Shown here: positions 29,043 through 50,293 of the stretch, piece by piece | Position numbering within the stretch: the stretch's first letter is position 1 | How the letters are laid out: every line of letters begins with the position of its first letter | DNA from: Macrostomum lignano | Lineage: Eukaryota | DNA: 64,000 nucleotides | NCBI GenBank assembly: GCA_002269645.1 | Contig: NIVC01000188.1 | Location: forward strand, 98,674-162,673 | Reading direction: 5' to 3' | The notes under the pieces: generated by a model | What the model saw: the letters and a program-made list of their open reading frames with translations, nothing else | Databases searched by the model: none | What the model was told of the DNA's origin: nothing | Program-made: the position numbers and the translations under genes

Positions 29043-29319
29043 CTAGATTTCAGACTGCCGCTTCTTCCGGCAGTCTTTGCACTTCCGCTTCCCCGTGGCG
29101 GCGCCGTCCTCAGCAGCAGCTCCGTCAGCCGTGGATTCCAGCGCCTGTTCAGCGTGTTTCTTCTTCTTCTTCTTCTTCTTCTGGCGGTTCTTCTTTGCTG
29201 GGTTTTGCTGCTGGTTCTGCTGCTGCTGCTGCGACTTGTCGGCAGTGAATATGCTGTACTTGTTGCTTCTGCTTGCCGGATTGCTTGAAGGCCGCTTCCA
29301 CGGATGCTCAGAGCAGAAG
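29043..29319 (-). CDS. NlpC/P60-like gene exon 5 (SFCSEHPW, polyQ/polyK tail)
   Basis: cggcag acceptor, phase 2, TAG at 29043. Confidence 0.82.
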
Positions 29320-47300: not shown

Positions 47301-50293
47301 AACTCTAGCCAGTGGGCGCTAAACTCTAGCCAGTGGGCGCTAAACTCTAGCCAGTGGGCGCTAAACTCTAGCCAGTGGGCGCTAAACTCTAGCCAGTGGG
47401 CGCTAAACTCTAGCCAGTGGGCGCTGAAATCTAACCAGTGGGCGCTAAACTCTAGCCAGTGGGCGCTAAACTCTAGCCAGTGGGCGCTAAACTCTAGCCA
47501 GTGGGCGCTAAACTCTAGCCAGTGGGCGCTAAACTCTAGCCAGTGGGCGCTAAACTCTAGCCAGTGGGCGCTAAACTCTAGCCAGTGGGCGCTAAACTCT
47601 AGCCAGTGGGCGCTAAACTCTAGCCAGTGGGCGCTAAACTCTAGCCAGTGGGCGCTAAACTCTAGCCAGTGGGCGCTGAAATCTAACCAGTGGGCGCTAA
47701 ACTCTAGCCAGTGGGCGCTAAACTCTAGCCAGTGGGCGCTAAACTCTAGCCAGTGGGCGCTAAACTCTAGCCAGTGGGCGCTAAACTCTAGCCAGTGGGC
47801 GCTAAACTCTAGCCAGTGGGCGCTAAACTCTAGCCAGTGGGCGCTAAACTCTAGCCAGTGGGCGCTAAACTCTAGCCAGTGGGCGCTAAACTCTAGCCAG
47901 TGGGCGCTAAACTCTAGCCAGTGGGCGCTGAAATCTAACCAGTGGGCGCTAAACTCTAGCCAGTGGGCGCTAAACTCTAGCCAGTGGGCGCTAAACTCTA
48001 ACCAGTGGGCGCTGAAATCTAGCCAGTGGCGCTAACATCTAAACAGTGGGCGCTTAACTCTAGCCAGTGGCGCTAACATCTAACCAGTGGGCGCTGAAAT
48101 CTAGCCAGTGGCGCTAACATCTAACCAGTGGGTGCTAAAATCTAGCCACAAAAATGCTTTGGTCTCTTCGTTTCAAATTATTGCAACAGCAGTCTCTTGT
48201 TAAGAAAATGACGCACCCCCTGGGCCGACCCCACTTGGGCCACCCATTTTATATTTAACTAAGCCATACAAAAGCCTGTGTTGAACGCGTGTCTGGTCAA
48301 TGCTTTGTTAATAAAAATAATAATACCTATATGACCCTGCAAATTGCACCGGTCTCTGAGCTGCCAAACTCGTTCTCTCTGCGCTCTGTCTCTTAATTTT
48401 CTATATCTTTCTCTCAAAACTCGACCTGTTTTTTTACACACAGTCTGAGCTCTGACCAACACTCAACAGGGTAACCCAGGTAACTGCGGCCAACACAGAA
48501 AAAACTTTTTTCTTTACTTTCCTTTACTCGGTTCTCTGGAATTCTTTTGTAAATAATTTATTCATCGTTTCTTAGGGGTGTAATAAATTAAAACAATCGA
48601 CACTAATAGACTTTATAAGGTTTTAATATATTTCATATTTTTGGCGTTTTAGATGACTTAAATAAAAATTTCCTTTTCAATAAAATTGTATTCGGTTTAA
48701 AACCACAGCTGCTTTTATTGTTCCTATTGTTGTTAGGGTTTAAATAGTGAATCATGTGTGTGTAATTTTAGTGCAATTTAGTGCAAAATATGACAACTTA
48801 AGTTGCCAATTCTCATCGCTCTACTGTCCAACTCTGTATAGTAGTAAGTTTAGCGTGTATGTTAAAAAACAAATAATAAGTTTAATAAATACTTTTGAAT
48901 TTTCACATCATTGATGCTTGATTACGAGTTGATATACAAGTGACACCTGTTAGACAGACACAAGTGACACCTGTTAGACAGACACAAGTGACACCTGTTA
49001 GACAGACACAAGTGACACCTGTTAGACAGACACAAGTGACACCTGTTAGACAGACACAAGTGACACCTGTTAGACAGACACAAGTGACACCTGTTAGGCA
49101 GACACAAGTGACACCTGTTAGACAGACACAAGTGACACCTGTTAGACAGACACAAGTGACACCTGTTAGACAGACACAAGTGACACCTGTTAGGCAGACA
49201 CAAGTGACACCTGTTAGACAGACACAAGTGACACCTGTTAGACAGACACAAGTGACACCTGTTAGGCAGACACAAGTGACACCTGTTAGACAGACACAAG
49301 TGACACCTGTTATCTGACACAAGTGACACCTGTTAGACAGACACAAGTGACACCTGTTAGGCAGACACAAGTGACACCTGTTAGACAGACACAAGTGACA
49401 CCTGTTAGACAGACACAAGTGACACCTGTTAGACAGACACAAGTGACACCTGTTAGACAGACACAAGTGACACCTGTTAGACAGACACAAGTGACACCTG
49501 TTAGACAGACACAAGTGACACCTGTTAGACAGACACAAGTGACACCTGTTAGGCAGACACAAGTGACACCTGTTAGACAGACGCAAGTGACACCTGTTAG
49601 ACAGACACAAGTGACACCTGTTAGACAGACACAAGTGACACCTGTTAGACAGACACAAGTGACACCTGTTAGACAGACACAAGTGACACCTGTTAGACAG
49701 ACACAAGTGACACCTGTTAGACAGACACAAGTGACACCTGTTAGACAGACACAAGTGACACCTGTTATCTGACACAAGTGACACCTGTTAGACAGACACA
49801 AGTGACACCTGTTAGGCATACACAAGTGACACCTGTAAGACAGACACAAGTGACACCTGTTAGACAATCATACCACACTAACCTTCTTCCTTCGCAGATA
49901 AGTTTGAAATGACTTTTGCAAAGCGGAACTTCTTGACCCAGCAGTTGTCGACGTGGACTTGGCGTCCTGGTCATCGCCAAAGTCAATAAAGAATGCAGCG
50001 GCAGTAGCCGGTGATGCAGCCGGAACAACAGCGGGGGTCGGCAGGTCTGCTTGGAAATCGGCAACACTTTCCTCTTCTGAAGTTGACGATGATGCGGTCG
50101 ATGCTGACTCATCTTCAATGTCGCTTCCATCATCGCCAGATGCTGACTCTCCATTGCACTCTTCATCCTCATTGGCATCTTCAGCGCTACTGGAACTGGT
50201 ATCCTCGTTAGCATCCAGGATAACATCTGTCTGATTTTGCTTCCCTGACTCATCGCAGTAGATGGACTGTTCAGCTTCCACAGCAGATGGCAT
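29043..50293 (-). CDS. Uncharacterised ~411-aa protein with NlpC/P60-like (papain-fold) Cys-His domain; 5 exons; whole-gene span
   Basis: Exons 49883-50293, 39410-39563, 33905-34108, 33141-33330, 29043-29319 join in phase (1236 nt). Motifs YFGVPY, LDCCGLV, PGDLVF, HVEVWLGDG. AATAAA at 29014-29019 (minus). Confidence 0.82.
30500..31715. repeat. (CTAA)n microsatellite, ~1.2 kb
   Basis: Direct reading. Confidence 0.97.
32460..33070. repeat. 22-bp minisatellite (atctatacaatatctattgcag)n
   Basis: Direct reading. Confidence 0.93.
33141..33330 (-). CDS. NlpC/P60-like gene exon 4 (catalytic His)
   Basis: AKKQKHNMVHVEVWLGDGPKTIGARWQKGKVQVFDSYKFVSTSYHSQVHHFCSIDTWLQGICR; donor AG|GTGAGA. Confidence 0.9.
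33370..33830. repeat. 20-bp minisatellite (ctactctactccaatctacc)n
   Basis: Direct reading. Confidence 0.93.
33905..34108 (-). CDS. NlpC/P60-like gene exon 3 (catalytic Cys)
   Basis: DPEYNSPLFLDCCGLVRRVMYDLRKEFGFRIGPWNQAYMFDTLPIRLTEETMQPGDLVFIEAVYYSET. Confidence 0.9.
34450..35900. repeat. 10/20-bp minisatellite (aacagaaacccatagaaatc)n
   Basis: Direct reading. Confidence 0.95.
36550..37630. repeat. 43-bp minisatellite (tctacttctcaccctacctcatctctatctgcatctatattgg)n
   Basis: Direct reading. Confidence 0.95.
38520..39150. repeat. 42-bp minisatellite (ctcttttcttagaaccgccgtcgcttttcttagaaacaccat)n
   Basis: Direct reading. Confidence 0.93.
39410..39563 (-). CDS. NlpC/P60-like gene exon 2
   Basis: acacag|KDLKRERK...KFLDRCRHYFGVPYKRKYW; donor G|GTGGGT. 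Confidence 0.88.
39660..40470. repeat. 44-bp minisatellite (tgtctacttctcacactaccaatctatatttatttatcactcat)n
   Basis: Direct reading. Confidence 0.93.
41135..43030. repeat. 23-bp satellite (aaaggaccgattcttaggttggt)n
   Basis: Direct reading; same family at 51086-51783 and 57202-57385. Confidence 0.96.
43643..43872. repeat. 30-bp minisatellite (ctcactcactgattcactcattctcactcg)n
   Basis: Direct reading. Confidence 0.92.
44790..45572. repeat. (ATCT)n microsatellite
   Basis: Direct reading. Confidence 0.97.
46674..48148. repeat. 21-bp highly homogeneous minisatellite (ctagccagtgggcgctaaact)n
   Basis: ~70 copies; periodic variant units. Confidence 0.97.
48938..49865. repeat. 24-bp minisatellite (gtgacacctgttagacagacacaa)n
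   Basis: Direct reading; begins ~18 bp after the donor at 49882. Confidence 0.97.
49883..50293 (-). CDS. NlpC/P60-like gene, probable exon 1 (acidic low-complexity N-terminus)
   Basis: ATG at 50293, donor AAG|GTTAGT, phase 0 matches next exon; linkage across a 10-kb intron is inferred. Confidence 0.65.

Follow-up and report, generated by a model that had tools for sequence, protein, structure and literature searches.

A divergent NlpC/P60-fold protein of the flatworm Macrostomum lignano belongs to a eukaryotic family recurrently fused to TTLL10 and is a candidate tubulin deglycylase

In a 64 kb window of the Macrostomum lignano genome (contig NIVC01000188.1; the window is the whole stretch of DNA analysed, and coordinates refer to positions within it unless another sequence is named), a gene on the minus strand, at 50293-29043, encodes a protein of 411 amino acids (aa) whose core (residues ~125-330), judging from its predicted structure and from family alignments, is a divergent NlpC/P60 fold. 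Across the family to which this protein belongs, TTLL10, a polyglycylase of the tubulin tyrosine ligase (TTL) family, is the only recurrent domain partner and gene neighbour. The explanation that best accounts for these observations, to which we assign a probability of roughly 0.4, is that the protein is a catalytically competent cytosolic amidase of NlpC/P60 fold, predicted to be the hydrolytic counterpart of the TTL-family glycine ligases. The components of this explanation differ in strength: the flatworm protein is, in all probability, an active cytosolic NlpC/P60-type amidase; the predicted amidase likely acts in the TTLL10/glycylation pathway; and its removal of glycines from tubulin is a possibility to which we give somewhat less than even odds.

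In the AlphaFold (AF2) model of the flatworm protein, an acidic N-terminal region predicted to be disordered (residues 1-120; net charge -28; predicted local distance difference test, pLDDT, <50-65) is followed by two long, strongly basic helices (residues 121-175, with the helices at 121-155 and 158-174 in the model; net charge +15), a compact domain (residues 176-330; pLDDT >90) and a disordered Gln-/Lys-rich tail (residues 331-411; net charge +14). When this model was compared with the PDB using Foldseek, seven chains were matched at E<1e-3, all of them NlpC/P60 peptidases with a probability of 1.0 (MepS, the P60 domain of MAP1204, Acd33800 and RipA; target-normalised TM scores of 0.40-0.67). 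A sequence profile built from 39 stand-alone homologues (profile A2) matched the PDB entries 3npf (E 4e-6), 3pvq (E 7.6e-6) and 4fdy (E 0.0044); it replaced a profile that combined fused and unfused members (A1), which had mostly matched TTL structures and in which the peptidase signal was blurred. By profile A2, the nearest solved relatives of the family are 3npf and 3pvq, YkfC-like dipeptidyl-peptidases VI that act as gamma-D-Glu-diamino-acid endopeptidases, and in the alignment the family motifs G.PY, LDCCGLVR, GDLVF and HVEI.LG fall on GIPY, VDCSGLVR, GDLVFF and HVGIYLG. An hhalign comparison with E. coli Spr gave a probability of 91% and an E value of 9e-7.

In the model, Cys200 lies at the N-terminus of a helix (200-210) and His266 in a strand (264-270), as in papain-like enzymes, and the non-permuted catalytic order, Cys200 then His266, aligns to the DCS and HVG of 3npf and 3pvq. 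Conservation was counted across 360 homologues, with denominators that vary by alignment column. The catalytic pair is invariant (Cys200, 345/345; His266, 354/354), and further near-invariant positions are Glu268 (354/354), Gln224 (355/355), Asp244 (356/356) and Arg281 (349/350). A sequence-only reading of this DNA had proposed an NlpC/P60-like domain with its catalytic Cys and His retained, a proposal supported by the seven Foldseek chains, the profile matches and the invariance of both residues in homologues. Other residues are specific to the family and absent from classical NlpC/P60 enzymes, namely a second Cys directly after the nucleophile (DCC; residue 201, 341/345), Glu268 two residues past the catalytic His, Arg281, and a C-terminal C-x2-H-x-W (322-327); the C-terminal consensus of the family reads SFCxxHxW...KxSIF.

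A C-terminal TTL domain matching the TTLL10 profile was found in 70/266 collected family members, and a Pfam scan of the long members without a TTL domain returned no other Pfam partner. In the fusion protein of the sponge Oscarella, the TTL part is a TTLL10 orthologue: it shares 45-54% identity with vertebrate TTLL10 over 99% of its length, and all named proteins among its best 120 matches are called TTLL10. Its best solved relative is the glycylase TTLL3. RefSeq/GenBank models that carry both domains, with LDCCGL and HVE intact, occur in vertebrates (Ambystoma, Pogona, Ophiophagus, Heptranchias and Lampetra) as well as in invertebrates (Acanthaster, Owenia, Tubulanus, Biomphalaria and Candidula). 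Not every fusion can be put down to annotation error: a protist genomic contig encodes both domains in a single uninterrupted open reading frame (ORF) of 617 codons (positions 8001-9854 of that contig, plus strand) and several other fusions derive from transcriptome ORFs. The peptidase part of this protist fusion is 62% identical to that of Stentor, and the protist fusions are most similar to Stentor (58-63%). The contig is gene-dense, with about 1 gene per kb and a GC content of 0.52, and carries Arf/Ras-type GTPase and leucine-rich-repeat genes just upstream of the fusion. A similar domain had been described in the sequence-only reading as fused to TTL-like proteins in ciliates; the fusion itself is real, with TTLL10 as the partner and with hosts among protists and animals, including vertebrates, but ciliate hosts were not confirmed, the named Stentor and Blepharisma proteins being stand-alone.

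Peptidase and ligase also occur as neighbouring genes. In Gopherus evgoodei (GCA_007399415.1) and Albula glossodonta (locus L003, 10001-38785), the peptidase gene lies upstream of a TTL-domain gene that has the same orientation, at a distance of 4.5 kb and 3.4 kb, respectively. This may be a tandem arrangement conserved in synteny, or a single transcription unit that has been annotated as two genes. Among vertebrates, the TTLL10 models of axolotl, lizard, snake, shark and lamprey begin with an NlpC/P60-like domain, and the TTLL10 proteins recovered from mammals, birds, frogs and most teleosts bear no trace of it: in 119 TTLL10 proteins, mostly from teleosts, mammals, birds and frogs, that were the best matches of the sponge TTL domain, no vestige of the peptidase domain was detected, apart from 2 truncated fusions. 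Published TTLL10 biochemistry used a Xenopus 105-570 construct. The predicted structure of a compact fusion protein contains two confident domains joined by a low-confidence linker (predicted TM score, pTM, 0.61), which suggests a tether between the two domains and not a rigid packing.

Members of the family occur across the eukaryotes and form 296 representative clusters at E<1e-30. Its hosts outside the vertebrates include sponges, a nemertean, annelids, molluscs, rotifers, the flatworm, echinoderms, a hemichordate, amphioxus and tunicates; vertebrate hosts are lamprey, shark, gar, paddlefish, reedfish, bonefish, coelacanth, axolotl, turtle, lizards and snakes; and hosts other than animals are a choanoflagellate, the ciliates Stentor and Blepharisma, Giardia muris, Cafeteria and volvocine algae. 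All named hosts build cilia or flagella. The match to the distribution of glycylation is partial: among named matches, the hosts are ciliated or flagellated and nematodes have none, yet the glycylating mammals, birds and insects have none either. We read the absence from mammals, birds, frogs, insects and nematodes as loss, since any close orthologue of the axolotl query should have appeared among the highest-ranking matches.

Since the best solved matches of the family are bacterial cell-wall peptidases, the protein could in principle be a conventional peptidoglycan hydrolase, antibacterial or horizontally acquired, or the product of bacterial contamination. Homologues bear automatic names, 'NlpC/P60 domain-containing protein' among them, and some metagenomic ones are called 'cell wall-associated NlpC family hydrolase', which points the same way. 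The structure of the gene makes these origins highly improbable. The coding sequence (CDS) of 1236 nt, or 411 codons plus the stop, runs from the A of the ATG at 50293 to the final base of the stop codon at 29043 and is divided into 5 exons by four introns, all with GT...AG borders and in phases 0, 1, 1 and 2. The codons split by introns yield residues that match the family consensus (YWTES-D-PEYNSPLFLDCC; YYSET-A-KKQKHNMVHVE; GICR-S-FCSEHPW), and 3/4 of the intron positions coincide in the bonefish (Albula) orthologue and the flatworm gene, on which ground the gene is an ancient eukaryotic one. No signal peptide or hydrophobic segment was found in the flatworm protein (maximum 19-residue hydropathy of 1.33), which instead carries long disordered acidic and basic tails. 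The breadth of the family across eukaryotes argues in the same direction, and in the fused homologues the attachment to a cytosolic tubulin ligase excludes a secreted role. NCBIfam holds the family models by which NCBI names bacterial and archaeal proteins, and a search of it with the flatworm protein gave no match. The peptidoglycan-hydrolase and contamination readings were rejected on account of the introns, the missing signal peptide and the fusion to TTLL10.

Translation of the joined exons gives a protein that matches BOX15_Mlig023358g1, a 'hypothetical protein' of Macrostomum lignano at NCBI, with 100% identity over 411 aa (E 4.6e-277); the gene model is therefore already public in GenBank, and the gene as such is not new. 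Together these features mark a real, ordinary intron-rich eukaryotic gene, far beyond chance. Five exons splicing in phase into about 411 aa had been claimed from sequence before, and this stands on the GT-AG borders, the length, the GenBank identity and the conserved intron positions; the four motifs then quoted are likewise present on the minus strand, in three frames. The description of the gene as hidden holds for the ORF list, where it shows poorly, and fails for the databases, where it is annotated. Its elements are as follows.

49883..50293, minus strand: exon 1, residues 1-137; ATG at 50293, acidic disordered N-terminus, then the start of the basic helices; GT donor at 49882-49881
49924-49895, minus strand: family motif ALQKSFQTYL, in the basic helix, exon 1
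39564..49882, minus strand: intron 1, 10,319 nt, mostly tandem repeats
39410..39563, minus strand: exon 2, residues 138-189 (to the first base of codon 189); basic helices; AG acceptor and GT donor
39452-39435, minus strand: motif YFGVPY, in exon 2
34109..39409, minus strand: intron 2, 5,301 nt, mostly tandem repeats; position common to the bonefish orthologue
33905..34108, minus strand: exon 3, residues 189-257; LDCCGLV, WNQAY and PGDLVF
34076-34074, minus strand: codon of the predicted catalytic Cys200, exon 3, in LDCCGLV
33331..33904, minus strand: intron 3, 574 nt; position common to the bonefish orthologue
33141..33330, minus strand: exon 4, residues 257-320; HVEVWLGDG, Glu268, Arg281 and SIDTWL
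33304-33302, minus strand: codon of the predicted catalytic His266, exon 4, in HVEVWLGDG
34073-34071, 33298-33296, 33265-33263, 33259-33257 and 29315-29298, minus strand: codons of the family-specific residues 201, 268, 279, 281 and 322-327, from the homologue alignment
29320..33140, minus strand: intron 4, 3,821 nt, holding an (ACTA)n array; position common to the bonefish orthologue
29043..29319, minus strand: exon 5, residues 320-411 and stop codon at 29045-29043; FCSEHPW and KYSIF, then the Gln-/Lys-rich basic tail
29014..29019, minus strand: AATAAA, a polyadenylation-signal-like hexamer 24-29 nt 3' of the stop codon, identified from sequence only

The gene is poorly visible in the ORF list because about half of its intron sequence consists of tandem repeats and its internal exons lack start codons. 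Between 29320 and 49882 the introns hold at least 12 tandem arrays, covering about 11 of 20 kb; these include an (ACTA)n array of 1.2 kb (30500-31718), a (CTAT)n array (44786-45580), a 23-mer repeated 82 times (41133-43031), a 21-mer repeated 70 times (46674-48148), and a 24-mer repeated 39 times (48936-49866) that abuts the exon 1 donor.

If the protein is the hydrolytic counterpart of the glycine ligases, its reaction may be pictured as follows. The attacking residue would be Cys200, placed at the N-terminus of its helix and activated by His266. Its target would be a glycyl amide bond within the side chains with which TTLL3/8 and TTLL10 extend the gamma-carboxyls of glutamates in the C-terminal tails of tubulin. 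The bond attacked could be the gamma-Glu-Gly branch point or a Gly-Gly bond within the chain, and hydrolysis of the thioester intermediate would shorten or remove the glycine chain, so that the enzyme would be a deglycylase. The basic helices (121-175) and the basic tail may keep the enzyme bound to the acidic tails of tubulin. Writer and eraser, joined in a single polypeptide in many other lineages, would then form a pair of which the flatworm protein is the eraser half standing alone.

This proposal draws on chemistry, on precedent and on charge. NlpC/P60 enzymes cleave amides on the gamma-carboxyl of glutamate, and since the branch of a glycylation side chain is a gamma-glutamyl-glycine amide, the known chemistry of the fold fits the bond to be cut; glycyl bonds, too, are among the targets of related Cys-His cell-wall enzymes. 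The joining of an amidase to a ligase has a precedent in which the amidase reverses the bond made by the ligase, namely the glutathionylspermidine and trypanothione synthetase-amidases, in which a Cys-His amidase at the N-terminus is followed by an ATP-grasp ligase at the C-terminus, the same layout as in the fused homologues described above. In these enzymes, unlike in the present family, the amidase is a CHAP domain and the substrate a small thiol-polyamine conjugate rather than a protein tail; the flatworm amidase, moreover, is stand-alone, and the predicted fusion model lacks fixed inter-domain packing. Finally, the basic segments that flank the core are suited to binding acidic tubulin tails. 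A bolder version, which we put forward as speculative and with the odds against it, is that the family is the long-sought tubulin deglycylase and that TTLL10 was ancestrally a bifunctional writer-eraser, in which an N-terminal NlpC/P60 glycyl amidase and a C-terminal polyglycylase together set the length of the glycine chain; flatworms, amphioxus, tunicates, rotifers and bivalves would be lineages in which the two halves later came apart, and mammals, birds, frogs and most teleosts would be lineages that lost the eraser.

Several observations weigh against the glycine-removing interpretation. The function is assigned through guilt by association with TTLL10, and a fused peptidase need not reverse its ligase; it could prepare the substrate instead. 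The flatworm protein itself does not have the ligase/amidase architecture, as it ends at the stop codon at 29045-29043 and carries no TTL domain, and tblastn found no TTLL10 beside the gene or elsewhere within the 64-kb window. In the fusion model, no fixed geometry between the predicted domains supports the handing over of a substrate. Taken alone, the flatworm protein reaches 18.9 bits (E 0.0015) against Pfam PF00877 (NLPC_P60), below the gathering score of 23, and a single-sequence search of PDB sequences returned noise only (E ~0.7-0.9), so that the relationship to the peptidases is visible only with family profiles and fold search; some homologues do exceed the PF00877 cutoff (25.4-26.7 bits), and several matches carry precomputed PF00877 assignments.

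The catalytic apparatus, as aligned, also appears atypical. The column that corresponds to the third triad His of Spr, at Gly279, is occupied by Gly in 331 homologues, Ala in 18 and Ser in 1, so that the canonical third catalytic position is Gly/Ala family-wide. The active site may be either a Cys-His dyad or one completed by another residue, and it is a guess that the invariant Glu268 substitutes for the third member of the triad.

The distribution of the family tells against a general role in removing glycines as well. Mammals and Drosophila glycylate tubulin, and no mammal, bird, frog, insect or nematode was present among the named family matches; the family therefore cannot be the universal deglycylase. 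Its coupling to TTLL10 is not strict either, because Volvox carteri, Volvox africanus, Pleodorina and Tetrabaena have family members (E 1e-37 to 1e-45), while Chlamydomonas has been reported to possess only the monoglycylase TTLL3 and to lack TTLL10 and polyglycylation. The volvocine members hint at monoglycyl branch points, or at another modification, as the possible target of the enzyme.

That other modification could be glutamylation, the family being in this case a deglutamylase that would take gamma-linked glutamate branches off tubulin tails or other substrates of the TTLL enzymes, for instance by tuning glutamylation at the sites used by glycylases. The nearest solved relatives cut gamma-glutamyl bonds, and the occurrence of the family in Volvocales is compatible with such a role given what is said of Chlamydomonas. 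According to the title of a preprint, TTLL10 activity depends on tubulin glutamylation, which would lend regulatory sense to a glutamate-editing domain attached to TTLL10. We nevertheless regard deglutamylation as decidedly unlikely, as the partner is a TTLL10-type domain in all 70 fusions and another Pfam family in none, and the invariant Glu268 in the active-site strand would probably be a better match for glycine, as an uncharged or amino-terminal ligand, than for an acidic glutamate. In addition, published work has shown that the CCP and TMCP enzymes already cover deglutamylation, including that of branch points.

The link to TTLL10 is also compatible with a part in the polyglycylation machinery other than that of a tubulin eraser, for example as a transpeptidase or acyl-transfer enzyme, as a processor of TTLL10 or its substrate, or as an enzyme acting on non-tubulin substrates of TTLL10 such as nucleosome assembly proteins and 14-3-3. 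Enzymes of the papain and NlpC/P60 folds can resolve their thioester by transfer, as LRAT/PLAAT do, and the Lys-rich C-terminal tail resembles a nuclear localisation signal. Glycylated proteins other than tubulin exist, among them the 14-3-3 of Giardia described in published work. We consider such a role rather unlikely: the ciliated or flagellated nature of every named taxon points to axonemal tubulin, and the fold is not of the permuted LRAT type. LRAT/PLAAT (H-rev107) proteins belong to the same superfamily and are likewise cytosolic animal proteins with a Cys-His core, but they are circularly permuted, with His before Cys, as well as lipid-directed and membrane-anchored. A reading of the flatworm protein as LRAT-like was rejected, as Cys200 precedes His266, a hydrophobic anchor is missing and no LRAT-type match was obtained.

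Set beside the bacterial NlpC/P60 endopeptidases (3npf/3pvq, MepS/Spr and RipA), the flatworm protein shares the fold, the motif order G.PY, DC(S/C)G, GDLVF, HV.I.LG, and the aligned catalytic Cys and His. Unlike them, it is eukaryotic, intron-containing and predicted to be cytosolic, with neither a signal peptide nor cell-wall-binding domains, and its family differs in the Gly/Ala third position, the DCC, the Glu after His, Arg281, the extra N-terminal helices and the C-terminal CxxHxW...SIF extension.

A deglycylase would join vasohibin-SVBP, CCP1-6 and TMCP/MATCAP in the class of hydrolases that undo TTL/TTLL modifications on tubulin tails. Vasohibins are also papain-like Cys-His enzymes but belong to the transglutaminase-like branch of the fold, and the CCPs and TMCPs are zinc metallopeptidases; none of the known tubulin-tail erasers removes glycine, and none is fused to its writer. 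Lalle et al. 2011, as cited in later papers, describe gDIP1/2 of Giardia, so far the only enzymes reported to shorten a post-translational polyglycine chain; these are M20 metallopeptidases that act on 14-3-3 rather than tubulin and are unrelated to the present family. A member of the present family also occurs in Giardia muris.

Elsewhere in the window, an intact ORF of 1079 aa at 53100-56339 on the plus strand encodes a hAT-type transposase, with matches to the hAT C-terminal dimerisation domain (E 1.4e-9) and to DUF4371 (E 6.7e-9); the transposon may still be coding. Adjoining the peptidase gene on its downstream side, and likewise on the minus strand (25719-27780), lies a thiolase-like gene (Thiolase_N and Thiolase_C_1), the N-terminal part of which starts MMAQQPRIVITGAGMTRF and which is interrupted by an intron-like, repeat-filled stretch with a frame change. 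Long 'ORFs' of 494, 419 and 519 aa fall on both strands of a GC-richer block at 16594-22383 (GC content 0.47-0.55). The 519-aa ORF (20824-22383, minus strand) is a tandem repeat and not a gene, and for this reason the 'grass antifreeze beta-roll' Pfam match of the 494-aa ORF (E 1.7e-28) is probably a repeat artefact.

Among the major tubulin-tail modifications, glycylation alone is without a known eraser, and tubulin deglycylases are described as 'unidentified' or 'yet to be identified' in papers of 2014, 2024, 2025 and 2026. Self-limiting binding of TTLL10 is proposed as an eraser-independent limit on chain length in a preprint that used a reconstituted TTLL10 system, and a paper from the Aravind laboratory on ciliary peptidases proposes transglutaminase-like domains, not the present family. 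No paper in the literature searched mentions both NlpC and any of TTLL, TTLL10, glycylation and tubulin tyrosine ligase, though an older mention is possible (for example, Anantharaman & Aravind 2003 or Iyer et al. 2009). The gene model and the NlpC/P60 domain label are both public, and neither is new; what is new is the atypical active site on an NlpC/P60 fold, found in the cytosolic setting of a eukaryote and in a writer-linked context that points to a protein-modification substrate.

An amidase that is repeatedly fused or adjacent to TTLL10 makes the question of the deglycylase directly testable. Should the deglycylase reading be wrong, the family would still be a widespread and unexplained partner of TTLL10. 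If it is right, the family would constitute a new enzyme class in the tubulin code, the full-length TTLL10 of many vertebrates would carry a second, overlooked catalytic domain, and tools would become available to remove glycylation in cilia and sperm.

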